Assembly: GCA_964247055.1 (NCBI GenBank)
Contig: OZ176050.1
Location: 1,984,001 to 2,048,000 of the forward strand
Direction of reading: 5' to 3'
Length of the DNA: 64,000 bases
DNA from: Paragordius varius
Lineage: Eukaryota > Animalia > Nematomorpha
A program made the position numbers and the translations under genes. Below, in pieces: positions 25,945-63,052 of this stretch. Each line of letters begins with the position of its first letter. Position 1 is the first letter of the stretch. Below the pieces are notes generated by a model that saw only the letters and a program-made list of their open reading frames with translations, searched no databases and was not told the origin of the DNA.

Positions 25945-28900
25945 ATGTTTATTAAGGAAATTATAATTGATGGTTTTAAATCTTATCCACAACGTACGGA
26001 GGTTAAGAATTTTGATAGAGAATTTAATGCCATCACGGGATTGAATGGAAGTGGAAAGTCAAATATTTTGGATGCCATCTGTTTCGTATTAGGAATCACA
26101 AATTTGACGCAAGTAATTTTTTATTATTATATAAATGAGGTAAGGGTTAACAATCTGCAAGAACTTATATATAAAAATGGACAGGCTGGAATAATTAAAG
26201 CTTCTGTAACGCTTGTTTTTGATAATACTTATAAAGCGCAATCGCCCATTGGCATGGAAAATATGGATGAAATCATCATAACTCGTCAAGTATTTTATTA
26301 TTTTAATTAATAGATTGTAACCGGAGGGAAAAATAAATATCTGTTAAATGGCTATAATGCAAACAATGCTAGAATAAGTGATTTGTTTCGGTCAGTCAAT
26401 CTTAATGTCAACAATCCACATTTTTTGATCATGCAGGGTAGAATTACCAAAGTTTTGAACATGAAACCGATCGAAGTTTAATTTTATGCTTGATAGCCAA
26501 GATTTTAAGTCTTATCGAAGAAACAGTTGGAACGAAATTGTATGACAGCAAACGGAACGCTGCGCTTAAAATTATAGAAAAGAAGGATCTAAAATTGGAT
26601 GAGATTCACAAGGTTATTAATGATGAGATAATGCCATTACTAAGTAAGCTTAATGAGGATAAAAAGGCGTTTTTGGAATATCAAAAAATCTGCCAAAGTA
26701 TGGATCATACGGAAAAAATTTGCAAGGCATTAACTTTCACTACGCTTCAGGTTCAATAAAGTTACAAATTTTAGGAAAAAATACAAAAGTATCAAGGGCA
26801 ACTAGAACTAGACCAGGAAAATTTTATTTCCAAAAAGAATCAAGTTTCTCACATCGATGACCAATTGAAAATATTGGGAAACGAAATTCAAAATCTTGAG
26901 AATAATTTACAAAAGGTATATATATATATATATATACCCCTGTCGCTTAATAGTTATAGTTATACGTCTGCTTTTTAACTTTAATTTATCTATTTATCAT
27001 ATGTAACCATTTCCTCTAACTAGATAGTTATCGCCTTTACAATGTGTTTTGGATTTTTTGATTTTATATAAAACTAAGGTAAATATTTATTTTGGCTTAA
27101 CTTTCATGCTTTTGTGACATCTCCCATAATCCATTATTTTAGTTATATAAACTTGTATATCCTGTGAGCTGAACAGTTAAGGCGTATAACTTTAATACAA
27201 ATTCCTATGGCATGAAACACATTTTTATTAATTGGCCACGATCATTCGTTAATTTATATTGACAGTCGAATGAACCGTCAGAAAATATATAAAATCTGTT
27301 TGTTTATTGCAAAGCGTTCTGACTTTACCATTTGTTTTAATTTTTTAAACGAATTTGCTTTGTACATTTATTTCAATGGTTTTATAAAACTTTCTTGGAT
27401 ATTTTTCGGCGGGCAACCACCAAATTCTTTCTCCTAAAATCTTGTCAAACCTTTATTTTCTATATTAATCAAAAGTGGCGTTTAGTTTTTTGCTTTACGC
27501 TATGATTTTCTTGTCAACTTGGCTTATATTGGGTTTATACTTACTTATAAATCTGATTTCTTTCGATAGTTATATTTCTTGACTCTTTATTCATAGTTAT
27601 AAATAATTGCGGGTTCATTCGCACCTGACATTTATTCATTAATATTTTTAAACTTTAAAATGTTTTATAATGTCAGGATAAAGGCAACACCATAGTTAAT
27701 TTGGAAAATGCATTGAAAAAACTACAAATCGAACAAGCCAAATGTGAAAGCGCCCACAAAAACCAAAAACTTGTGGCGGAAAATGAAGCCCAAGAATTAG
27801 AATCTATTGGAAAATCGCTTGATGAGGTTTTTAATAAAATGGATCAGTCAAAGATAAATACTTTTTTTGTATAACTAAATTGAAAAAAAACAACATTTAA
27901 CGCAATCTCATTTCCATTAGTTAATAAAGTTTTATGAGAATATGCAAAAATATTGAATCAATTTAATTATCATCAAAATAAAAATCTTTTTCAAAATATC
28001 TCTAAATTGGGTAATTTCAAAACCGTTTCTGCCTTTTGTATATTAATTATAAAAATGTTTACTCAGTCATATAAAACTGGCCCAGTTTCGAATTGCATAT
28101 GGAAATTTAAACGTAATGAGGTAAAGTAAAAATTAAACTGTACGTTTTGGACAATGATAAAGTATTGTCTGTCCACAGCAATAAATAATATAAAAATGGT
28201 GTTGTTTTTTTATCAAATAATTGTTTTTTTATTCAATAAAACAATAATTAATATAATAATTTTACTGGGACATGTTTTGAAATTAATTTGCATTTATTTT
28301 TTTATTATTGTTTGTAAAAGTTGCTTGACTTATGTCATTTATAGTGTATTTAATATTTAGAAAGGTTTCAAATACACCATTTGTAATTTTCCCTTTAATT
28401 TATATAGAAATATAATCAAAATCTGTAGACTTTATATTCAACAGTTAAATGTGGGTAAAAGTATAATAATTCATATGATCTAAAAATAAGCTGTTATCCG
28501 TAATAGTTGTGGCCAATAATAAACAAACGTATATATACCGAGTAAAATTTTTGTCAAAAAATACAATTTAAATTTATTTTCACGAACTTACCATAAACCA
28601 ATCTGCCGAAATGAGGAATTCCGATGACTGCGTCCATAACTCATCTTTTTTTATAATACTTTCATCATTTCGTTATTGTTAAGACAAAGTATCCAATTTT
28701 ATAATGACGGATTTCATCCCACTCCGTCTTATCTTATTCGGCAGGAATTTTAAATATTTATTAATTGAATTTTATTTTAGCATTCGTTCATATTCGCAAT
28801 AACTTTTTTGACAAATGACAGATATTAATTAATTCCATACTTTACTTACTGTTGAAATGAAAGCTTTAAAAATTTATTTATCGTAAATAAGTTAACAATA

Positions 28901-39400: not shown

Positions 39401-42400
39401 CATTTAAACGCGATTATTTAGACTTAATTTATAAACTTTTGTTTAAATTAAGGGCCTCCACATTACATTATGAACTGTAATAGAGTTAATATTGTCTAAA
39501 ATTGTTATTGGCCCCTGAAATTCCAACTATAAACAATCCAATAAAAAAATTAAAAATCATACCAGCTTTTATACATCAATTACATTGTATTCAATTTTAA
39601 AAAGACTCTGCATCATATCAATAAGAAATTAATAATATATTACTTTGGTCGGCACATTCCATTAAAAATTTAAATATTTGTAAATTACATTATTTTTATG
39701 ACATAAAATATACCGAAAAACTGATTCTATTAACAATTTATTAGGTTAAAAAAATATTTGTAACAATGTTACAATTTTTTTAATTAATTTAAAAATAATA
39801 AAGAAAACAAAAGTATGCATATATAACAATTCAAAGAAAATTATTATTAATAAAATATACTAATTTATAAAATAAATTTATATGGTGAATAATAATTAAA
39901 AAATTAGCAAAATGTAATTGGCAGATTCTTGCTGAGAGGCGCTCACTTTGTTACAAACAATATACCACCGTGTTTTCAACATCTTCAAAGAAATATTTAA
40001 TAATAAAATTTATTTTCTTGTATAAAAGAAGGTAGATAATCATTTTATTAAAAAATGTTTAAAAAAAAATTAAATTATATATATAATAACTCAAAGAAAT
40101 TATTATTATAAAACATGAATTTATATTTATAATAAAATAATTGATATCGCACATTGTTCAAAAATATTAATTTGTTAAAGATGAAAAAAATCAAAAATAA
40201 ATATTAAAATATTAATATTTTTTTTATAATTGAATAAACCGAAACTGTGAAAAGTTTGTTATACATTTTAGTATAAATTGCAATTCATTTGCACTTTATC
40301 AATTATAAATTTTAATTATATACTTAATTTTTTATGATCGTTTTGGTGTATAAGGATTCAAAAAATAAAATATTTAATTTCACAATATATTTTTACATTT
40401 AAATATTTTTTATTTAATATGATGGATTGGACCACTATTGCAACTTCCATTCCAACAACATGTCAAAATAGATTGCCTAACCTCATACCAAGCCAAAAAA
40501 TATCTGACAATCTCTTTGAATGGCTAATGAATTATTCATCAAATGTTTATTATGCATTTCTACTCAGCTCCTCCTCCATCAACCCTAATAATTTGGGAGA
40601 TGTCAGTCCTAATAAGATTGATAGTATTGTGACCAAAGATAAAGTAACATTGCCAAAACCACCATTTTCCTACATAGCCATGATTGTTATGGCACTTAAG
40701 CAGGCACCCGAAAATCAATTGACACTCAACCAAATTTACCATTTTATTATGGATCGGTTTCCCTATTACCGAGTTTGTCGCCACAAGGGCTGGCAAAATT
40801 CGATTCGGCACAACTTGAGCCTTAATCCGTGTTTCATCAAGGTTAAACGATGTAAAAATGATACGTTTAAAGAAATGGAAAAACGCACCCAAGACCCCAG
40901 GAGATGTGGAGGCAATAAGGGAAGTTATTGGAAGTTGGCTCATGATTGTGAAGACATGTTTGAAAATAATGATTACCGAAGACGGAAACGCAAAAGCAAA
41001 AGGGACAAAAAATGGAAGCATTCCGATGATAACAAACACCCCAAACACCCAAGCAATGATGAATCTCCTCAACCAATGATTAATGCTACTCATCCCGATA
41101 TAAATTCAACCTTAACATTTTCCATATCTACTCTATTACAATAATAATATTGATATGATTTTTTATATACTCTCTTTTTACTATTGTAGAGATTATTTAT
41201 TTGTTTTAATAAATAAATTGCAATATAAAATTTAAATTTCATTTGTGATTATTGATGATAAAAAAATTTTAACAAATAATATTTTTTAAGATATTGTATT
41301 GGTCGATATATACCCTTTAAGGATCTATATCTTATATTTTAAACATGAGAATTGTAAAAAAATACCAAGACAATATAACTACTATTTATTTTACCAATGT
41401 TAGTAGCTGAAATTTGGCATTTTTAGAAAATTCGCTTAAAAAAAATCAATTGCTAAGATTTAAAAAGCATATTTTTGCAAATTTCGCGGACTAAAAGACA
41501 TCAAAAATGTCCCAACTTTAATTAATAATATTCATCTTTACCGTAAATTCTATCTGTAAAAATTTAATGAAAAAACTGCTGGAAACTCTTTTAAACATAC
41601 TGTATGACAATACACTTTTAATAAAAAACATAAAAACACTCAAAACGTTTTGCCTAAAACATTTCTCTAAATCTGTAAAATTATTATATACATATCATGG
41701 TAAAATAAAACAGAAAAAAACACTGATCTAAATCGACAAAAAGCAGTTTTACATAAGCTAATAATTCCGATTGCACATACAAAAGGCTTTAGTGTCAATC
41801 TCTAAAAATACTAACGGTTTAAACATGTTTTTAAATGTATGAATTCCTTTTTCCAGCTTTAATAGCCATTAAAAATATGCAGTTAAATTCAATGTGTTAA
41901 GGTTAACGTAATCAGACTTTAAGCGAACCATTTCCACTCTTGCATCTTAAAAAATTAAGGGCAAATTATACTAGTATTATTAGTGAATAACATAAAATTG
42001 TTCACAAAATTAGCCTGATATCTAAAACTTTAATAAATCCAAAAATAAACTTAAAAATAAGTTTGAATTAAAAACATGCATGAATAAAAAGTATCTAACC
42101 TTAGTTTTATAATTTTTGAAGTGCCATTATTTTTCATGACAGTTCCATTGTATTGAACAGAAAAAATTTTGTGATTACCAATTGCAACTCCTTCAAAGGA
42201 GTTTGTATCATCAAAATATCCAAAAACTTGGTAAGGATTTTTTGTGCTTTTGTGCGGTTCACTTTTTACCCGACCCTCCAACAATTGCAAAATATCTTGA
42301 ATATCTATATCATAAACTGGCTCCAATTTCGGACCATCTAGCCAGGCAAATAGGCGTAAATCATTGCTAATTACATGGGAACACGAAAAAAATTCGATTT

Positions 42401-50689: not shown

Positions 50690-51610
50690 TGAAAAGTAAT
50701 GGATGATTGTGTGACACCGTAGAAGATTGATTAATATAGTTTGATTGTTGAAAAGTGTTGAATGACTCTATAAAATATCCATAAAAGATTGTTAATATAA
50801 TTTGATTGTAAAAAGGGTGTGTATGCTTATATATAATACCCATGAAAGATTGGTTATTATTTGATTGTTTAAAAGTGCGGATGATTGTGTAAAATGCCCA
50901 TGAAAGTATTGTTAATTTAATGTGATTTGGATGATTGTGTAAAATAACTATAAAAGATTGGTTAATATAATTTGTTGAAAAGTTGTGGTTGATTATATAT
51001 AATACCCATGAAAGATTAGTTAATATAATTTGATTGTTGTGGATTATTTTAAATAATACCCATAAAAGATTGGTTAATATAATTTGATTGTTTAAAAGTT
51101 GTGGAAAAATACCCATGTAAGATTGGTTAATATAATTTGATTGTTGAAATGTGGTGGATGATTGTATAAAATACCCTTTAAAGATTGGTTAACATAATTT
51201 GATTGTTGAAAAGTTGTGGATGATTGTATATAATACCCATGAAAGATTGGTTAATATAATTTGATTGTTGGAAAGTTGTGAATGATTGTATTAAATACCC
51301 ATGATTGGGTAAATAATTTGATTGTTGGAAAGTAGTGGATGAATATATATAATACCCATGAAAGATTGGTTAATATAATTTGATTGTTAAGTTGTGGATG
51401 ATTGTATTAAATACCCATGAAAGATTGCCTAATATAATTTGATTGTTTGATTTATAAAATATTCATACATGATTGCTTAATATTATATGATTGTTGAAAA
51501 TTAGTAAATTGTATATACCCATGAAAGATTGCTAATAATTTGATTGTTGAAAATTATTGGATGATTGTATAAAATATTCATGAAAGATTGGTTATTATAA
51601 TTTAATTGTT
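50690..51610. repeat. Minisatellite, ~50-63 bp unit, roughly 15-16 degenerate copies
   Basis: Recurrent unit ~atgattgtataaaatacccatgaaagattggttaatataatttgattgttgaaaagttgtgg in head-to-tail array. Confidence 0.88.
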
Positions 51611-51644
51611 AAAATTAGTGGATTAAATATTTAATCATATGGTC

Positions 51645-52613
51645 ATGACCACTCATAATTGGGTGATTTATGTATTATAAAAATAACATTTAAATACCTA
51701 TTTTTTAATATAATAATTTAATCTGGCGCCCCTTCAACTATGCCCCCCGGTGGAACAGCCCACTTCCTCTACCCTCTAGCTACGCCATTGTGTAGATTGT
51801 TTTTGTGATACATGAAATGCTTCGGCCAATTACCGTTAAGTTTGAGTTAAGCCATCAAACAAAGCTTGCACTTGATCGTCTTCCCAGTTATGCGGTCTAA
51901 CAGAACGCCCATTTAACTCTAAAAGCTCAACTCGAGAACGGCGGAGAGGAGAATGATAATTTAACGATAAACCAAACTGATGAAGATAACAACCAATAAT
52001 CGGGAAGTGGGGGAGGAACAAAGCAAAGAAAAAGAAAACGAAAAAGACACCCAGGTTGAAATAAGAACGGAACAGACAACTGAGAAAGAACTTGAAATGA
52101 GATATCCTCTTAGGGAAAGAAAAGCACCAGATCGGCTCGGATTCGGATAAGGAGATATGATAGATTTGAATACATCAGTTTTAACCTTAGACTAGATAAA
52201 TTTATATATTAGATTTGAATAATTTTTTATGACCTTTTATATTTGAGTTAAACTATTGTATCAATTTTGTGTTTAATCTTAACACGTAATTTTACCTTGG
52301 TTTAACATGTAAATATTATATTCACAAAAAGTGTATAAACATTACTTTATATAGTGTAGCTTTTTTATTTTATCTCAATAAATATTATTGTTTTACGGTT
52401 TCTCGATTTACCACAATAATATTCAACAAAATGCTTGCATGACTAAGAACTATGGTTTTATAGTTCTCGCAATTAGATTTATCTCCCTTTTTGATTGAGA
52501 TAAACAGTATTTGCCAATCTTTTGGCATCGACCTCCATACTTCCTGACACAATCTATGTATAACTGATATCGGTATATCTCTTATTAATTCCAAGGAATA
52601 TTATCTATTCCAG
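51645..52613 (+). repeat. Duplicated composite segment, copy 1 (paralogous to 63053-64000)
   Basis: Collinear high similarity from gtcatgaccactcataa to ggaatattatctattcc, with scattered substitutions and small indels. Confidence 0.9.
51790..52428 (+). mobile_element. 3' end of a Ty3/gypsy-like LTR retrotransposon (pol tail, PPT, LTR)
   Basis: Frame ending EMRYPLRERKAPDRLGFG-stop, followed at once by purine run AAGGAGATA (52149-52157) and a TG...CA segment 52158-52428 containing AATAAA. Confidence 0.55.
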
Positions 52614-53960
52614 AGGCTTTCCTTATTGGTATCGATTATAAAGCTTTTACTACCTCTGCTTCTAATATACATAACTCATCATCCCCATTCCCATATAAAT
52701 GTCTATAGTTTGCAAGTGGGTGTGCATTATATAGCTGTTTGGTGTAACTTTCTCATCCTTTAACTTCTATTTCCGTCGTCAAGATCCTTTCATTGTCCTT
52801 AATATTAATGTTTGGAAGTTGGTATTGATTTTTTACTCTTCTGGTTTGGAACAGAGGTTTACTTAAGCCTTTTCTGTAAGCTTCCTCAATAATCGTGCAT
52901 TGTTCAGCTCAGTATTCCTCCAGGTTTTACCTTTCCTGCTTTTAAATTTAATTTTTTAACCATATCTCTTTCTCCGCTTTTCTTAGCTTTTCTTCTTTCT
53001 TCAATTATTTATATACAGTCATCTGATAACCCTTTTTTATATGATGTTTTTTTCTTTGGTAAATATTTTTGTGCTGTCTCGTGAATTATTCTTATATTAT
53101 TCCTTTGGTTTGTGAGTTATTATCCATTTTACCTATTAATTCAATTCTATTATTTACTTCTATCTTATATTCTAAAGAGATTTGTTCTACGTTGTATTTG
53201 TGTTATTTTTTCTTCTTCCGGAGTAACATGTGCGTTTTAATTGTTGTTATTAATAGTTGGTGATCGCTTGAGCAGTCACAAATTATTTTGGTTTTAGCAT
53301 CTATGAAGAACCTTTTCCATTTTTGTCATATAAAATAATTTATTTGGTTTTTAATTTCCGAGAAGGGGAGGTCCAGATGTATAGCCGTCTTTTATGTTGT
53401 TTTTACCATGTATACACAACAAACATTTGATTAATCATACAGAATTCGATCAATCGTTCACCAGATTCGTTCCTTTCGAATCCGTGTTTTCCCAATATCA
53501 TGTCTTACTCTTGATTTCCAACCTTTTTCCAATCACACCTATTATACTGATATCTTTTCGGTACAGAGTTTATTAAGTCTTGGAGCTGTTCGCAAAATGC
53601 ATCTATTTTTTCTTGTTCGGAGTCCGCTGTAGGGGCATAAACAATGATATAAGTTAAGTTAATCGGGCTAGCATTAAATCTGATGCTCATGATTAATTGT
53701 ATAAATTAAACGAATTGACATATTTATTATATTCTTTATTTAATATTACATCAAAACCCTCCCTCTTTATTTCATCGTGTCCCGACATATAATTACAATT
53801 TTCTTCGTGATATAAAACACCTTTGCCCTTGTAATGGGTTTTAGTGATACCCAATAAATTGGATTCTTTGCATATCGTTTCCTATTAGAGTCTTTTTTTT
53901 CTTCATTCCAACTCCTGCGTTCCAGTTTCCTATACGTATTTTATCTATAACTTTAATTTT
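52430..53960 (-). mobile_element. Degenerate RTE-clade LINE (BovB-like) fragment: AP endonuclease and start of RT
   Basis: Minus-strand peptides KIRIGNWN, SIRFNASPINLTYIIVYAPTADSEQEKIDAFCEQLQDLINSVPK and MPKDWQ..ISIKKGDKSNCENYKTIVLSHAS match RTE endonuclease and RT-start motifs; many stops and frameshifts; 3'-truncated at the LTR. Confidence 0.8.
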
Positions 53961-54775
53961 TGGCATATTTTTGTGATCAAGTTTGCCGGGGCTTTGTTGA
54001 ACCATACTTAAGGTGTATGGATTCCGTTACAATCTAAGTAATAACTTAAAGATATTTTAAAATATAATAATCCTGCGCTTGTACGCGCCTTAGGGCAGGG
54101 GGACGTTAATCATTCTTCAGGGCTCCTAACAAAAATATGCAATGAAACGTATGATACCAACAATATATAATAAACAAAAAATTAATATAATTAAGGCTAA
54201 TGATTTATGATAAGGTAGCAATACGATGAGTAAAAATCTAAAAATGAATGGCATGAGATACCGATTTTCAAATTAGTCACCCAAAATTATAGTGCGACAT
54301 CATATTTTATTGCGCTAACAAAGAAACGAATTTAATAGTGAGAATAAACATAAAATCGATTTCCAAATTTTTGAAAGTCCATAAATAGTTACTACATAAC
54401 AGAATCATTTAACTGTGATTATAGAATTGTGATATATTCGGAGGGTTTAAAAAAGTAATAACCAATTTTTTGGTTTAAAATTGGCCAATATGAAAAGGAA
54501 CTTGAAAAATGGAAATAAGATTCGGACAATGATTATTGAAATGTTTAACTCTTAACTTGAAGTTGATATTTTCAATTTAATGTTTATTAACTCACTTAAA
54601 GATATAAGCCTCATGCAATAAAAAACCGGTGATGATATAAAATATTTATAATCTATTCTATTATTTTTAAAACTAAATGTAAAGTAAAAATTAAAAATAT
54701 TAGGTAGAACAGGGGGATTTCTATACAGGTCATGGCATCCTTATTACAGGGCGGACAAAATGATTGTATGATAGA

Positions 54776-54778
<3 letters not shown>

Positions 54779-54806
<28 letters not shown>
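54779..54806. repeat. (TA)14 microsatellite
   Basis: Direct reading of sequence; shorter TA runs also at ~26917 and ~59145. Confidence 0.9.
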
Positions 54807-56586
54807 AGAATTAACCGACTGGGAAAATATAGATACTTGAAGTAGTTTGTTTATATACATAAACAAATTTGTGAAGTACGAAGTAACCGAAAAAACAAAG
54901 ATATATATTTGCTAAAAATTTATACAACAAACACAAAAAGGAAGATTTAAGAATAAAAAAAATACTGTCCTTGGTTTAAATTGAATTCCCCTGATCCAAA
55001 AATTAGGCTAAAGTAAAAGAAAGCTATCCAATGCTGCGCGCCAACGTGCGACCCAGCATAAAAAAAGAAAATTATATATATAAATTTTAAATAGTTATTA
55101 ACGTTTAATCATTTTAATCATTCAGAAACCGTATATCTTTATTAATTTTATAAAATTATTTTTAATGATATGATTTAACATGTGATTAAATATATATAAG
55201 CTTTCTACGTTATTACAACATTGAAAACATTTAAAAGTTAATAATTTTATGAAATGGGAAATAAATTAGTTTGAAAAAAAAGTTTGTGAATAATTATTTT
55301 TTAATGATAAATATATTATAAATAAAGAATAGGTGGAAAATAAAATAAAAAACAAATACAAAAATTATGGTTATATTAATAAAAATATAAGAACCGAAAG
55401 TGTTCAAGGCACTCTTGAAGTAATGGTATTAATATCAAAACAACTAATCAGGTTCTTTAGCAGTTTAATTATAAATCGGTAGATTTTTTTATGTATAAAG
55501 GGACTCAAAACCGAATTATATATTTTTGGATGCCACGATAATTGAGGTATGTTTTTGGAGATTTCGGCAGTCGATAACCCAGACTATGTGAGGCAACATC
55601 TGGCGAAAAGCAATTACTAAGTTTTGCCAACCTTTGGTTTTTTCATCCGAATGCATACAGTTGGCTTGGATCGACAAAATGATGCGAATCAAAAAATCAA
55701 TTCAAACTATTATTCCAGCCCAAATATATTGACTGACGAATGATAAGGCGGATGATGCGTATATAAAGTATCTATCATCGCCAAGTCTAGGTTTCCCCTG
55801 TTAGTGCAGTTTTCTAAATGTCCAAATCCTTTTCATTAAGCCAGCGTTCAACACAAATATAATCGCGGGCCAAATAATCGTCAGGCTGCATTCGAAAAAT
55901 AGATGGGCATAAATAAATTTTAAATTTTAATTCAAATTTTGTAAAAAAGGAAATGAAAAATTCGATATTGACTTATCAAGATAATTTATTTAAAATATAA
56001 CAATTTTACAGATTTTATGAGCATAAAACGTTTATATACTTGGTAATTTTTCAATTTTTTAGCGGGCCACATATAATATCTTGAAGGAAAGAACCAAAAG
56101 AATTTTTATTAGTTCGTTTTGTTTTAAACTGAATATAAAATTATCTGAGTCAGAAATATCGTTTATATCCACTTGACACAGTGTTAGAAGGGGCGTTGTA
56201 ATATGATTTACTTTACCGATATATTTATACGCTCGAATTTACAGTATAAGTAAGTATACATTGCTAGAAAGATATTAATGATTGCTAAATAGCACATGGC
56301 TTGTAGTTTTTTTCTTTTTACCTTTATTAGCTAATAATACTGCTCTTTGTATATACTGTGGAATTAAGCAATGTATACTTACTCATATGTAATTTTTATA
56401 GTATTGGTCTCATTATTTTCATTTTGCATTTATTGATTAGTGCATTGCACATATCTTCAAATTGACAATGTTATATAATCATTAAATTACAATTTTTTAT
56501 TCAATAATTATATTATATCAAATTAAATTATCACGGGCCTCTTAATTTAGCAGGGATAGCTGAGCGTTCATTAACATATTTTGGTA

Positions 56587-57728
56587 TTAGGTCGGTTTTA
56601 CACTAAAACAATTCCACCATTTTTTCTTATTCTTTTTGTGAGTTGTTGCATTCGGGGTGGGTGAACGACGCGGTAAAACTTGAGCACATCTTGGGCTATT
56701 GTTGTTTGGGGGTGGTGGTCTTGGGGCAATGTTTGGCGGTTTTGTGAATCCAGTGGATGGAGAACAAGCGGTAATCGTATATCTTGGGTTGTCGTTGTTT
56801 GGGGGTGGTGGTCTTGTTGCAAAGTTTCCAGTGGATGGAGAAAAGGCGGGAATCACATATCTTGGGTTATTGGTGTTTGGTGGCGGCGGTCTTGGTGCTA
56901 GGTTTTGCGGTAGCGGCATTGGCGGTTTTAATGCTCTAGATGGAGAAAAAGCAGGAGTCTCATGCACACCTTGAGAAAAAGGCTGCCTATTTACTAATAA
57001 ACCTTGGCGTGGGGGAAGTGGCGGCGGTTGTTGATCATGCAATTGATTGATATAAATTGGTACGGATGGATTAGGGGGTCTATTTGTCCTTAAACCTGGA
57101 CCTCGGATTGGTGGCGGCTGTTGATGATTGTTAGGTTGATTTATATAAATTGGTTCTAACGAACTAGGCGGTCTATTCATTATGAAACCTTGACGAGGGA
57201 GAAGTGGTGGTGGTTGTAGATCATTTAATTGATTTATATATATTGGCTCGGATGGATTAGGGGGTCTATTTATCCTTAAACCTGGACCCCGGATTGGTGG
57301 CGGCTGTTGATGATTGTTAGATTGATTCATATAAATTGGTTCTGAGGAACTAGGTGGTCTATTCATTATTGATCCTTGACGAGGGGCAAGTGGTGGCGGT
57401 TGTTGATCATTGAATTGATTTATGTAAATTGGTACGGATGAACCTGGGGATCTATTTTTCCTTAAACCTTGACGGGGTGGAAGTGGTGGTGGCGGTTGAT
57501 GATGATTGTTAGATAGATTTATATAAATTGGTTCGGAGGAATCTGTAAAATCACTCAGACTTTCATTCGTTATTGGTTTTGTTATTTTATTATTTTGATA
57601 GGGGGTTGGAGCGGATAGTTTGCGCTTTGTGACAACTTGTGTCGTTTCTTCCTTTAAGTCCTTTTTCTTTTGCCTTTTACTTTCATTCTTGTGTTCTTTT
57701 GTATCAGCGGTCTTGGATTGCTTTTGTC
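56587..57728 (-). CDS. Orphan proline-rich repeat protein (or last exon of a gene starting at 58970)
   Basis: Frame is stop-free from ~57765 to the stop at 56587, ~130 codons upstream of the first ATG (57366). Contains six ~31-aa PIY(I/M)N/poly-Pro repeats, three ~27-aa RPPPPN repeats and a KKNKKKWWNCF tail; GC content well above background. Confidence 0.6.
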
Positions 57729-58013
57729 CTTTACAGGAAGAAATGTTTATTAAGCTTAAGAATTATAATAGGATATCTATAGTAAAAAATAATACCTTTT
57801 ATTCATTTTATCATAATTTTTAAAATATTTTGTTTAAACGGCATTTCGAAATTGTATTTTGATAATAAAGCCATATATTTACATGAAAATTAAGGAACAA
57901 ATAATATGTTTAAAAATTTAATTATTATTTTTACTTTCTGTAACAGTTTAATTAATAAATAATCTATGATTCATTTAGTTGTTTATAGATGAAAACATTT
58001 TTGATGAAATTAT

Positions 58014-58970
58014 TTAAGTGCATGTAAAACCTTTTTTATTCGGTTTCACCACAAGATCAGTTAGAGATTCTACTTCAAGGTCTGCATATTTTTTCACTAA
58101 TTTTTTAGCTATTTTTTTTTCAAATTGGCGTTCTTTATACCGTTCATTTTCATACATCACATATGTGGACTCCAAGTTTTGCGCAACTTGTCGCGAATAT
58201 TCCTCCAACTGTTTGCAAATTTTGGCTTCTTGGCGTAAAATCTCCTCAATATGAAGGGACGTCAACTTACTATTTTTCTGTTGTATAGTTATGGCTGTTC
58301 CTTGTAATATACAGGGGCCAGGCTTTGTCTTTTGCCAAAGCTCAAAAGGCCTAGGTCGGTATATATAAAAACTGTCATTTGGTCCATACATTTCTGGCGT
58401 TTTGTCTATCTTTTCTCCTCTAACTGATTGATTATCTGCCGTTTTATTTTCGTATGTATCTTTATTTGGTAAATTCTTTGTAGACTTATTATTGCGACGT
58501 TGTACACAATTGTCTAATAATATGCTAATTAATGTTTGTATGGTAAAATAGGCTATTATCTCTTGCCATTTCCTGATTTCAGCAGTATTGTAGAAATTAT
58601 TTTTACTTGTATCGTCAATTGCGGTTTTATCAGTATTTGGTGATTGTGTATTGTTATAATTAATAATAGCATCATTTTGCGAATTATTTTCTGTATCTTC
58701 ATAGGAGATGATATCCTGTTCATCTGCTTCAGCTTTAAAATCACCAAGCTCTGTGTCAGAGCTGGTGTTTTCATTTGTAATCGGAGAATATTCATTGTGA
58801 GGTGTACTAATTGCGTTTTGGGGTGAATTAGTTGTGTTAAACTGCAAAGGTGATGGAGAATGTGATTGAAAATTTGAAGTTGCATTTGGATCTTCGTCCA
58901 TAAATGGTACCAAACAGGTACTGCATTGGTTAAACGGTTTTTGACAAGTTCGGCATATTTTAAAACTCAT
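58014..58970 (-). CDS. Orphan 318-aa ORF with N-terminal CxxC-x6-CxxC and C-terminal charged coiled-coil-like region
   Basis: 957-nt ATG-initiated ORF in AT-rich DNA; MSFKICRTCQKPFNQCSTC; S/T/N-rich linker; no family recognised. Confidence 0.6.
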   Translation of the reverse strand: MSFKICRTCQKPFNQCSTCLVPFMDEDPNATSNFQSHSPSPLQFNTTNSPQNAISTPHNEYSPITNENTSSDTELGDFKAEADEQDIISYEDTENNSQNDAIINYNNTQSPNTDKTAIDDTSKNNFYNTAEIRKWQEIIAYFTIQTLISILLDNCVQRRNNKSTKNLPNKDTYENKTADNQSVRGEKIDKTPEMYGPNDSFYIYRPRPFELWQKTKPGPCILQGTAITIQQKNSKLTSLHIEEILRQEAKICKQLEEYSRQVAQNLESTYVMYENERYKERQFEKKIAKKLVKKYADLEVESLTDLVVKPNKKGFTCT

Positions 58971-59138
58971 TATTAATCGATGTCGGGGTGTATTATTTAT
59001 TGAAATATTAAAAACACAACATTAAATTGAAAGATATTTTTATATAAGATAATTTGATTGTTAATATCAATTTTTAACATGACGTATTAAACCATCAATA
59101 AAACCTCAATTTATTGTGTATAAACGATAAATTAATAA

Positions 59139-59170
<32 letters not shown>

Positions 59171-60599
59171 CCTTTTTTAACCAAAGTTTCTAAATTGGTC
59201 GCGTTTTTTGTCCTATATTTGGAATATAAAAAAAAATAATATGAGTAAATATATTGCATTAAATTAAATTTCATTAAATAATTAATATAATAAAATCCCG
59301 CTATCCATACAAAAGTCGTCAGGGCTATAATCTTTCCTACTAAGCTATCTGCCATCAACATTTTGATGATAAAAGTGTTGCATTGTTATTTTTAGGTATA
59401 TGTGTCAAATTCTTTTTATCTCAACACAAAAAAAGGAATAAAATGTTTAATATGCCTAGGGTTGTGCCCGTTAGTCTATGACCTAAGTCATTTTTTTTTA
59501 TTTTTTTATTTTATTAATTTTCGTTTTAGGAAAACAAAACCTTATATTATTTAAATATGTAGTATTTTGATTTAAATATCATATGATATACATTTTTTCT
59601 TACTTCCTCATAATGAATCAGCCTTGTGGAAATTTATAGAAAACCAAGTTACAAGCTAGAAATGCAATTGCACTATATATTTAAATAAAAACCGAACGAA
59701 GAAACATATAAAGAAGTTTATAAAATAAATTATGACAGAAGGTGATGGTCTAAAGCAAATTAATATTTAATTTCTTAGGTTTAGTTTTATTTTCTGTTTT
59801 CAAGAAGAAAATAGCCAGTAACATTTAGCAAAATTTATTTTTACATCCTCTAATTTTAACATAGTTGAAAAGGAACATTTCCGGATTTCATTAATAGTTT
59901 GAAATAATTATTTGAGCATAAATAGGTTCCAATAAATTCCTATTGTTAGTCTTATCTCTCTGTGATTTAAAACTTTCTATAGTCTTTATGTATGATTCCA
60001 GGTAAGATAGTTAATTGTAGAAATTTATCAGTATTGGTGAAAGTATACTTTTAAAAAATATACTTTATGTAAAATCTTTTTTATGTAATTTAATCAAATG
60101 TATGTAGTTATTTTATTGGCAATAACATATACAACCCTAAATATGCCAATTACTATATCACTCATGTGGATATTTTTAACATATTGCCAATCCGTTGTCC
60201 GTTAACACCAATTTATATTCCTTGAAAACAATATGCATCTCTAGGTTTAGTCAAATTTTACATTGCTTAAACCCTTAAATAATATGGTTATAGTTAGGTA
60301 AAGTGTTTTGGATTTAAAGCTTATTCGTAGTCAAATGTGCGCCAATTTGCTCAGTTGTAAAGGGATATAAAATTTTGTAATTAAAATTTGTGTAATATAT
60401 TTTAATAAATGTTAAAATCATTACAGTGTCCATAATTACAAGGTTCCCTTTTTAAACTAATATGTCTGGTAAGCCTTGATTCTAAATTTGATTGTGTAAA
60501 TGGTTATTTGAATGTATTCGTGCTCTAAATGGGTTTGCATTAAAGGTGATACGGACACCAATATTATTAATTTAATAATATTAACATTTTTATGTAATG

Positions 60600-60960
60600 A
60601 GATGAATTTTGGATTTTTGGAAATATCAAATTATGCCCATAACTCGTTGATACCCCATGACATATGGATATAACAAATAAGCCGGTTCAATTTAGATTCG
60701 ATCTGGCACATGCACATCCTGTTGGAATTTTTTGATTCTGAAAACTACTCATATTTAGACGCAATCTCTAAAGAGCATCGCAAAGAATAAAAATATAATG
60801 AGTTTTGGCAAGATGTGCGAAACAAATATGAAAACATAAAAAAATGTGTCCAGGTTATCTTCACCGTTTTCCCTTCAACTTACATATGCTAGGCATATTT
60901 AAAAATTAAATATATCATACTTCTAATCGCCTCACAGAGGTCAATACGGACCACGTATGA
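60600..60960 (+). mobile_element. Possible hAT transposase C-terminal remnant
   Basis: Translates EFWQDVRNKYENIKKCVQVIFTVFPSTYIC, resembling the hAT dimerisation-domain pattern FW...YP.L...A...L..FPSTY.CE; no TIRs found. Confidence 0.45.
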
Positions 60961-63052
60961 GTATCGGCCTATCATGAGGCTATACAAGATTTTTGTTGAT
61001 TAATATTTAAATTTATTTTATTATCAAAAAATTTGTTTGGTAGGAGATATATTTTGGGTGCTAATTGCGACCCGAAAAAATCTCGGTCTACTGATACATC
61101 AAATATTTGTAGATATTAGCCAAAAAAGATGACCTGTAAAATTTTTTTTGGTGAGTACCACTAGCGTTAAAACAAATCATAATTCTGGAATCGATTTGAC
61201 TTTTGAAGAAGAAGTGGATCTTTAGGCGTCATTCTGATCAGTGTCCAAGTTATATAACAGAAGACCCTTTAAGATGATATTTGCGGAATGACAATCTACC
61301 AAATATAAACTGAATTCCACAGTTTGCACATCTTTTCAACAAATGTTCTATAAAGTTATCCAATTTTTACAAGGGAATTGCGAAAATTGTCGATAATAGC
61401 AGTTATATTGATTTTATTTTAAATACGATAGGTTAACCAACTGTCATTTTTACACATAAATTATATGTTAATTTATTTACACTTTATAATTTGTAACATG
61501 TTTCAAAAACTGTGGTAACTAAACACTCTAAAAATCCTATTATTATATAATATAAAAGTTGAATTGTGATTTTATCTTTCATGGGAGATAATATTTAGTC
61601 TATTTCAAACATTTTTTTGAAATGTGAAATATGGAATTGTGGATTGAAAATCAGTTAAAAGCAATTCAAATAATTTAGAAATGTAAAATATTTTTACAAA
61701 TAGTTTTGTAAGAATAGGCAGGTTTTGAGTGCGGTCTCCCTATTAAAATATAATATATAAACTATATAAACCATTTTCAAGTATATTACAGAGTTCTGTA
61801 TAAAAATTATTAATTGCGGTAATAGCCAATAAAAATAACTGTTTTGATGCCATAGTTTAAACAATCATATCTTAATTATAAAAAATTGTATCCAAAATAT
61901 CTTAAAATTCTCCCATAAAATGTAAGAGTATTTTGGTCTTTAGTATACTTATTTTATTCAATAAATCTTTCAGATTTTGGTTGTAAATAAATTTTCTTTA
62001 ACTCAAAAATTACGCACAAAAATTAAAAGGTTCCCTGATCATTGTATAACCCTATGGTTAAAAAATTTTAGCATTTGTATCGTATAAAGTGCAAAAAAAT
62101 ATGTATAAAAAATTCTAAGTAATTAATTACTCAACATAACAATTTATAAGTATATAGTTTCAGTTAAACATATTATTATTATTGTAATTCATGATTTTGT
62201 AATATTCCAAAACAATAATTATTCCAAATCAAGCCAAGAGTAAAATATGGATATAAGGCTATGCGAAGTTCATACATTTGGCCAGTACCATATTGATTGT
62301 TATATGTGTTTATTAAATTGTCAATAGGGAAAAAAATTATACCTGCAGACAACATTAAAGATTTTTACCGTAGTAAACAATTTTAAAGTCCCATATAACC
62401 AATAATAACTGTTTACCAGTTCAAGATACAACACTGATTAACTTATAACTTGATATATGGTTATCTGCATATTCAATTCTTTATCCGACTCACCTAAAGA
62501 CTTTAAATCAGATTCGATTGGAAGAAAATATAAAACTTTGATATATCTATCACTGAAATGTATTTTAATGGGATGTTTTTTGATTTCATATGAGGAGTAA
62601 AGTATCAAATAGCTGGTAGAGGTAATGGAGGTATTAGACATTATATAAACCTCATTACATTTATAGACTTACCAGTGAAGTAGGTGTCATCTTTCAATTA
62701 ACATCGCGAATGGTTTAGTATATTTTTAAATGTTCATCCATCTAAAAAATAATATTTATAAAAACAAACAGCCTTCATACCATATCAAATAAAATTTTTG
62801 AACAAAAAATTAAGCATGCCGGGAATCACTAAGTCCATGTTAGAAAATATAGCGACCAAAAAATGAAAAGGCGTAGTAAGCTAATAAAAAGTTTAAGATT
62901 ACTTGACGTGTAAGATAAATTCCATTGTTTAGACGGGTTAGCGATTGTAAGGAGATTTTAAATTGATAGCTGATAATAGAGGTGTAGCTTTCATCGCTGG
63001 CGCCCCTACCACTCCATGCAACCACCTGCATTTTAGATATTTAATAAAATTG

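Follow-up and report, generated by a model that had tools for sequence, protein, structure and literature searches.

We describe an intact two-exon gene of approximately 690 codons in the genome of the horsehair worm Paragordius varius, the last exon of which encodes a tandem array of tyrosine- and proline-rich repeats. The gene lies on the reverse strand of a 64,000-nucleotide stretch of contig OZ176050.1 (positions 1,984,001 to 2,048,000; hereafter the window, whose coordinates are used below unless another sequence is named), with the array in the exon at 56587-57728. The protein had originally been predicted to be an orphan. We found instead that it is one of about 16 largely intact copies in the assembly, four on C1 (the window gene among them) and 12 on C3, and that it has a homologue in Gordionus sp. 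As far as database searches indicate, the family is so far confined to horsehair worms and has not been described previously. We suggest, tentatively, that the window protein is an intracellular, disordered scaffold presenting multiple ligands for Src homology 2 (SH2) and Src homology 3 (SH3) domains, encoded by a family amplified through tandem and palindromic duplication. Docking scaffolds built from tyrosine and proline motifs are a known kind of protein; the family that carries the motifs here is new.

The feature had been delimited at 56587-57560, but the open frame continues to a splice acceptor at 57729/57728. The first in-frame ATG of exon 2 is at 57366, and the frame is open from there up to the acceptor AG. 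Approximately 300 nt upstream of exon 2, a 318-residue open reading frame (ORF) at 58014-58970 stops just past a GT donor, and joining 58031 to 57728 preserves the frame in phase 1, with G and GA forming a glycine codon. Donor and acceptor are in phase 1 in every C1 and C3 copy examined, although synonymous divergence (dS) between the two subfamilies is 0.6-0.76. The sequence obtained by reading through past the donor is not conserved between subfamilies, and in pairwise alignments of C1 copies the intron indels are not multiples of 3. Because splice sites and phase are common to diverged paralogues, and because both parts are contiguous in the Gordionus homologue, we conclude that the array is the last exon of a two-exon gene. 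The window as a whole is AT-rich (approximately 28% GC), with a local peak in GC skew that the proline codons create.

Translation of 56587-57699 (-) reproduces exactly what had been read from the sequence in the original prediction: six repeats of approximately 31 residues, each with (E/V)PIY(I/M)N followed by a polyproline segment, then three RPPPPN repeats, two NPRY motifs and a C-terminal tail, KKNKKKWWNCFSVKPT, directly before the stop codon. PPPL(P/A/L)PRQG closes four of the six units, and PPPIRGPG the other two. Across 56998-57541, Tandem Repeats Finder detects one period of 93 nt (5.8 copies, 71% matches) and another of 186 nt (2.8 copies, 85%); the two together confirm the predicted A/B super-unit of approximately 62 residues. 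The same program finds a 78-nt unit twice at 56749-56905. Exon 2 contains seven YxN sites in total, the six Y(I/M)N and one TPYQN, with LPPRQ-type motifs 11-13 residues downstream of YxN sites. The P-I-Y-x-N core is invariant in all 28 units of the four C1 copies, which carry either six units (the window copy and L030) or eight (L029 and L031). Within the window copy, the units differ synonymously in the codons for I, Y and the +1 residue, and the neighboring residues vary. Since independent units are so few, we regard this invariance as a modest signal.

The resemblance of these units to known Grb2 ligands is what points to a docking function. The unit core YINQS is identical over five residues to the Grb2-SH2 peptide of the epidermal growth factor receptor (EGFR), FLPVPEpYINQSVPKR (1062-1076, Y1068 site), which binds GRB2 with a KD of about 0.7 uM (PMC11391413). 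PPLPPRQ in turn resembles the SOS1 motifs S9 (PPVPPRQ), S5 (PPAIPPRQ) and S6 (PPLLPPRE), which, together with VPPPVPPRRR, bind the N-terminal SH3 domain of GRB2 (PMC11391413). GRB2 is also documented to form phase-separated assemblies or meshworks with multivalent ligands (PMC11391413; bioRxiv 10.1101/2023.06.17.545433). For EGFR and SOS1, the SH2 and SH3 ligands are on separate proteins that Grb2 bridges, whereas the window protein has both putative ligands approximately 12 residues apart in one repeated unit and carries no kinase or guanine nucleotide exchange factor (GEF) domain.

Candidate partners are encoded in the same genome. For the SH2 half of an SH3-SH2-SH3 gene at C5:3998188-3998743 (L039), the best match in the PDB is human GRB2 (E 1e-15), and the tryptophan that aligns with FLWVVKF is retained. 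This gene is the Grb2/Drk orthologue. The FLWVVKF tryptophan of the Grb2 SH2 domain enforces the preference for YxN. The orthologue is compact, with very short gaps between its exon pieces. A Src-type gene (SH3-SH2-TyrK) is located at C6:3.887-3.894 Mb, many tyrosine kinases are present, and there are three loci with PID domains, the phosphotyrosine-binding (PTB) type for which NPxY motifs are ligands. Copies on C1 have NPRY twice, and the homologous C3 sites read NPRF or NPF.

When each exon was searched separately, in six frames, against the assembly that contains the window (G000; 110.6 Mb, 44 contigs), the C1 copies were located at 2.041 (the window gene), 2.054, 2.275 and 2.303 Mb, with 91-98% protein identity. 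The 12 C3 copies, at 11.59 and 12.00-12.33 Mb, are diverged (50-60% identity) and mostly intact, with a few damaged, and fragments of the family are also found on C4 and C5. At every copy fetched, an exon-1-like segment adjoins an exon-2-like segment. The reading frame is clearly maintained by selection. In pairwise alignments of C1 copies, the exons (2.08 kb) differ by only 3-4 indels, all multiples of 3 (3, 3, 3, 72, 108, 183), the large ones being gains or losses of whole units; the flanks (4.4 kb) differ by 49-74 indels, mostly not multiples of 3. The ratio of nonsynonymous to synonymous divergence (dN/dS) is 0.2-0.4 among C3 copies and 0.34-0.51 between C1 and C3. Given the strict preservation of the frame and the C3 ratios, the protein product therefore matters.

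An alignment of 16 exon-2 sequences, together with a table of their motifs, distinguishes what the family shares from what is peculiar to C1. Across the copies in the assembly, the basic patch, TPYQN (TSYQI in one), LPPRQG, PAFSPS, KPPMPLP, NP(R)F and, close to the C-terminus, (C/W)WNC(C/F) are kept. PIY(I/M)NQ, in six or eight units, and NPRY occur in C1 copies only, and exon 2 has 9-11 tyrosines in C1 copies versus 1-4 in C3 copies. The C3 copies instead contain two tyrosine-free proto-units, STLTHTPPPPLPPRQG and SATPINTTPPFLPPRQG, and read TPINT at the unit position, NPRF or NPF, and a CWNCC tail. A polybasic run with one Cys is likewise found only in C1, with NNETNCWNCC there in other copies. 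The third site reads NSPRC or NSPRF. Thus, the tyrosine units, NPxY and the polybasic tail, all absent from the 12 C3 paralogues, are a young trait of one subfamily. The predicted docking scaffold is supported at the level of motif matches and available partner genes (EGFR YINQS, SOS1-like PPLPPRQ, Grb2 and Src-type genes), and its tyrosine motifs do not extend to the C3 copies. The C1 signaling features may stem from a few events that were later amplified, namely one tyrosine-bearing insertion, one F-to-Y change and one remodeled tail, and the two NPRY motifs may represent a single F-to-Y change that was then duplicated. The apparently systematic gain of signaling features in C1 is suggestive only.

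Outside the genome, a profile of the conserved exon-1 domain (A1) searched against 1.84 billion representative proteins identified one true relative, CAK9297721.1 (P0001) of Gordionus sp. (Nematomorpha), at E 9e-26. Like the window protein, it has an N-terminal CxxC-x6-CxxC motif, a helical domain of approximately 180 residues (approximately 37% identity) and a Pro/Arg-rich tail. Unlike the window protein, it has a BACK domain (PF07707, E 6e-15) between the Cys motif and the helical domain, which Pfam does not detect in either exon of the window gene, and neither PIYxNQ nor LPPRQG nor a Cys tail occurs in its Pro/Arg-rich part. Its conserved domain and Pro-rich tail are encoded in one exon, without an intron between them, at a locus of 28% GC. 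A fragment resembling residues 153-232 of this protein, just past BACK, is present in a C3 copy at L028:3574-3847 (+), equivalent to C3:12336574-12336847. It is inverted and occupies part of the intron that separates the exon for the N-terminus from the one for the conserved domain, and could be the remnant of an ancestral architecture that contained BACK.

Protein searches of 5.8 billion and 1.84 billion sequences matched only the Gordionus protein, and a homologue search starting from that protein returned only itself. The exon-2 homologue search, restricted to lengths of 208-663 residues and hence excluding the full protein of approximately 690, returned none. ESM Atlas gave no usable match for either part, PDB sequence searches with the A1 profile and exon 2 gave no match, and no encoding contig is on record for the two window ORFs. 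An Rfam search for SL1, intended to probe a nematode origin, gave an uninformative negative. Pfam assigned no family to either exon at E<=0.1, in agreement with the earlier statement that no catalytic or recognizable folded domain is present. Some candidates were rejected. P0002, a second match to the profile, is a repeat protein of low complexity. In exon 1, a motif of the MINDY cysteine-protease type (Q..GPC.L) had no Pfam or PDB support and falls in a segment predicted to be disordered. EPIY was ruled out as PPxY, a WW-domain ligand, because position -3 holds E or V instead of P or L.

The AlphaFold2 model of exon 1, built with the family alignment, has a mean predicted local distance difference test score (pLDDT) of 45. 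A helical block at residues 238-296 reaches 76-88 and the remainder of exon 1 is below 50, and Foldseek comparison of the model with the PDB gave nothing significant. Exon 2 is proline-rich and probably disordered. No hydrophobic signal sequence is present at the N-terminus, which is a Cys knuckle that the Gordionus homologue also has, although the CxxC-x6-CxxC motif is degraded in at least one C3 copy. Given no signal sequence, a low-confidence fold and no domain matches, we predict an intracellular protein that is for the most part disordered. The C-terminal combination of a polybasic run, WW and Cys could act as a membrane-association element. The spacing is not that of a CaaX box, which places the Cys four residues from the end: in C1 the distance is seven residues (CFSVKPT) and in C3 it exceeds 20. 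Pfam found no PH, PTB, transmembrane (TM) or myristoylation modules in either exon at E<=0.1. On its composition, the basic patch KEHKNESKRQKKKDLKEETTQVVTKRK might be a nuclear localization signal.

We infer phosphorylation, binding, localization and signaling outcome from sequence, in the following model. An ancestral ...TPINT-PPFLPPRQG... unit would have gained a tyrosine in the C1 subfamily, and the resulting unit, NRPPxxS-EPIY(I/M)NQ-x5-PPPLxPRQG, would have been amplified to 6-8 copies. A Src- or Abl-type kinase could phosphorylate the YxN sites, which could then bind the SH2 domain of the worm Grb2/Drk orthologue, and the LPPRQ-type motifs could bind SH3 domains. Grb2 would be sequestered from Sos or cross-linked into a Grb2 meshwork or condensate, outcomes that are likely in this model because SH2 and SH3 ligands are in the same unit. 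The helix may add valency, and the basic, aromatic, Cys-containing tail may bias the protein toward membranes. Proteins of the Sprouty2 type, with a phosphotyrosine, PxxPxR and a Cys-based membrane anchor, titrate Grb2 from Sos. The window protein has no Sprouty Cys-rich domain and no homology to Sprouty2, and the parallel in mechanism is by analogy only.

The adaptors LAT/NTAL, Gab/Dos, FRS2 and Shc resemble the window protein in being disordered, multivalent Grb2 platforms with several YxN sites and a membrane element, the last putative here. In the window protein, however, the sites form a near-perfect tandem array with an SH3 ligand-like motif in each unit. As it shows no homology to these adaptors and has no PH, PTB, TM or myristoylation module, it is akin to the Grb2-docking adaptors but not a member of the group. 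If the units do bind Grb2 through both SH2 and SH3 domains, they would constitute a recently arisen, natural ligand that is both bidentate and multivalent. Because the tyrosine-free precursor survives in paralogues of the same genome, this would be a clean case of how the gain of a motif and the amplification of units give birth to a signaling scaffold. Such binding would also provide a first handle on tyrosine-kinase signaling in Nematomorpha, a little-studied parasitic phylum known for host manipulation.

Several observations weigh against a Grb2-directed scaffold. Short linear motifs are weak predictors of function. Strict class II PxxPx[KR] sites are present in only two of the six units (PPLPPR at 57472-57489 and 57007-57024), such that the predicted class II SH3 ligands match the consensus there, whereas PPLAPR and PPLLPR fall outside it. 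Recent duplication and gene conversion account for part of the invariance of the tyrosine motif. The young C1 copies have a dN/dS of 0.5-0.7 (1.4 for one pair), and substitution divergence in exons (1-4%) is close to that in flanks (4.5-5.5%); given these values, residue constraint in C1 is weak or, the copies being young, not yet measurable. Frame-breaking variants had been named beforehand as evidence against function. Among the four C1 copies there is only one, a TGA after KKKKW in L029, which removes the last eight residues of the tail. The basic patch could equally direct the protein to the nucleus. Finally, since the tyrosine array is absent from the 12 C3 copies and from Gordionus, it is not the core function of the family.

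A second explanation, which we consider somewhat unlikely, is that this is an ampliconic, fast-evolving, lineage-specific family, for example one expressed in the germline, maintained by copy-number or gene-conversion dynamics. Motifs in its low-complexity tail would then have no particular role, and its likeness to Grb2 ligands would be a coincidence amplified by unit duplication. One pair of copies is in tandem, others occupy the arms (15.7 kb or more each) of a palindrome, and a decayed 5.6-kb array is interrupted by stop codons. The identity of the copies is mosaic, dN/dS in C1 is 0.5-0.7, and the only relative found outside the genome is in Gordionus. Such dynamics fit less well with a frame that is strictly kept against a high indel background and with C3 ratios of 0.2-0.4. 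The five-residue identity with a proven Grb2 site, combined with a Sos-like motif at fixed spacing in each unit, also suggests more than composition alone. Were the motifs inert, a palindrome-borne, ampliconic and phylum-specific gene family would still have been documented.

We also considered, and find unlikely, a scaffold of proline motifs that works independently of phosphotyrosine, in which LPPRQG, KPPMPLPPNF, PAFSPS and NPF/NPRF could bind SH3, WW, EH or profilin-type domains and the C1 tyrosines are incidental. It accords with the conservation of LPPRQG, KPPMPLP and PAFSP, but not PIYxNQ, in both C1 and C3, with the number of strict PxxPx[KR] sites (3-6 in C3 copies and 10 in L017) and with the occurrence of NPF in several C3 copies. 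It leaves unexplained why all 28 units retain P-I-Y-x-N while codons within the motif vary synonymously, and strict SH3 sites are fewer in C1 (two in the window copy) than in C3.

The E-P-I-Y core in a variably duplicated segment, six versus eight units among paralogues, recalls bacterial EPIYA effectors (CagA, Tarp, BepD-F, AnkA, LspA, Tir), for which duplication of EPIYA-type motifs in disordered regions is a hallmark (PMC3593179). The residues after the tyrosine differ, I/M-N-Q (Grb2-type) here and A (Csk/SHP2-type) in the effectors, and the window gene is spliced, lies on a 15-Mb animal chromosome, lacks a secretion signal and has a homologue in Gordionus. As it is spliced, belongs to an animal and has no secretion system, it is akin to this group but not a member of it. 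We would put little weight on the idea that a tyrosine-free tail became an array joining EGFR-type SH2 and Sos-type SH3 sites, as a convergent, eukaryote-encoded EPIYA counterpart that traps or polymerizes Grb2/Drk and that, in the boldest version, is exported into the arthropod host to rewire receptor tyrosine kinase (RTK)/Ras signaling during parasitism; this is very unlikely. A host-directed mimic as such, exported into arthropod host cells, phosphorylated there and hijacking Drk/Grb2 as an analogue of the EPIYA effectors, is highly improbable, even though horsehair worms parasitize arthropods and the motif duplication is of the effector type (PMC3593179). The action on host cells raised in the original prediction has no support: an N-terminal signal peptide is lacking, and the Cys-knuckle N-terminus is shared with Gordionus. 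The protein has a basic patch resembling a nuclear localization signal, the ancestral family has no tyrosine motifs, and Grb2 and tyrosine kinases are encoded by the worm itself.

An ORF of a transposable element or virus, or a non-coding repeat open by chance, is extremely improbable. In its favor are the multiple copies of the sequence, some of them fragments on C4 and C5. Against it, Pfam yields no transposon or viral domain, although no search for element termini was made; the copies form three clusters of tandem or palindromic segmental duplications and are not dispersed; and the family has a conserved spliced structure, a selected frame and a single-copy-type Gordionus homologue with a BACK domain.

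The genomic setting of the family merits description in its own right. The window copy and the one next to it result from a direct tandem duplication: by blastn, window 51623-61090, which contains the whole gene, is 88-97% identical to window-equivalent 63033-74000. The four C1 segments are 95-97% identical, and the mosaic distribution of this identity suggests gene conversion. An inverted repeat at C1:2270813-2286509 / 2292236-2307849 has arms of at least 15.7 kb (84-94% identity) around a spacer of approximately 5.7 kb, and each arm holds one gene copy (2.275 and 2.303 Mb) with the 3´ end toward the center. A decayed tandem array with a period of approximately 5.6 kb is found at C1:2599585-2635212; its pseudogene copies combine exon-1-like segments, each interrupted by several stop codons, with no more of exon 2 than approximately its first 50 codons. 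Within the window, 50723-51623 is occupied by an AT-rich satellite that is non-coding and in which periods of 62, 119, 169 and 403 nt are nested; its end coincides exactly with the start (51623) of the duplicated segment that bears the gene. The 146-residue ORF listed in this satellite is a repeat artefact. On C3, an opposite-strand ORF of 176 residues at L019:3458-3985 (-), equivalent to C3:12024458-12024985, lies between a truncated conserved-domain exon and exon 2, and may be an insertion that broke that copy.

Table 1. Features of the gene and its surroundings in window coordinates (the slash in a sequence marks the splice site).
Feature	Position	Strand	Remarks
Exon 1	58031..58970	-	ATG at 58970; 313 codons and first base of a split Gly codon; from the ORF list
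GT donor of exon 1	58030-58029	-	AAAG/GTTTTA; phase 1 in 13 copies examined
Intron	57729..58030	-	302 nt, GT...AG, phase 1
Splice acceptor	57729/57728	-	ttcctgtaaag/GA; polypyrimidine tract, AG at 57730-57729
Exon 2 (last exon)	56587..57728	-	379 codons and stop; 21% Pro
AATAAA, candidate polyadenylation signal	56496..56501	-	86 nt past the stop; from sequence only
CxxC-x6-CxxC N-terminal motif (CRTCQKPFNQCSTC)	58914..58955	-	aligned with Gordionus P0001 (WVCRTCQKPYFQCKTC) and copy L017
Conserved 183-aa exon-1 domain (A1)	58032-58580	-	kept across paralogues; matches Gordionus at E 9e-26
Long helix, possible coiled coil, exon-1 residues 238-296	58083..58259	-	AlphaFold2; inside the 183-aa domain
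Basic patch KEHKNESKRQKKKDLKEETTQVVTKRK	57619..57699	-	resembles a bipartite nuclear localization signal; basic patch at the same place in C3 copies
TPYQN (YxN motif)	57592..57606	-	kept in 15/16 aligned copies; TSYQI in L030
Six tandem 31-33-aa units, A/B alternating, PIY(I/M)N in each	56992..57555	-	translation and tandem-repeat analysis
PIYxN codons	57517-57531, 57418-57432, 57325-57339, 57232-57246, 57139-57153, 57046-57060	-	
PAFSPS / KPPMPLP / RPPPPN region	56677..56991	-	contains the two NPRY motifs
NPRY motifs (n=2)	56854-56868, 56776-56790	-	NPRF or NPF at homologous C3 positions
Tail KKNKKKWWNCFSVKPT	56590..56637	-	polybasic, aromatic, one Cys; aligns with NNETNCWNCCSAEPT... of C3 copies
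Direct tandem duplication, unit 1 with the whole gene	51623..61090	.	unit 2 from 63033, past the window end

Two other ORFs in the window drew our attention. The ORF at 25945-26310 (+), judged by eye only, resembles the N-terminal ATPase head of SMC2. At 40419-41144 (+) there is a single-exon, FoxL1-like forkhead ORF whose forkhead domain, compared with that of vertebrate Fox proteins, has an insertion of 16-17 residues. The top match of this ORF, from a duck assembly, is an artefact of a fused two-domain model, and its best genuine database match is to Gordionus.

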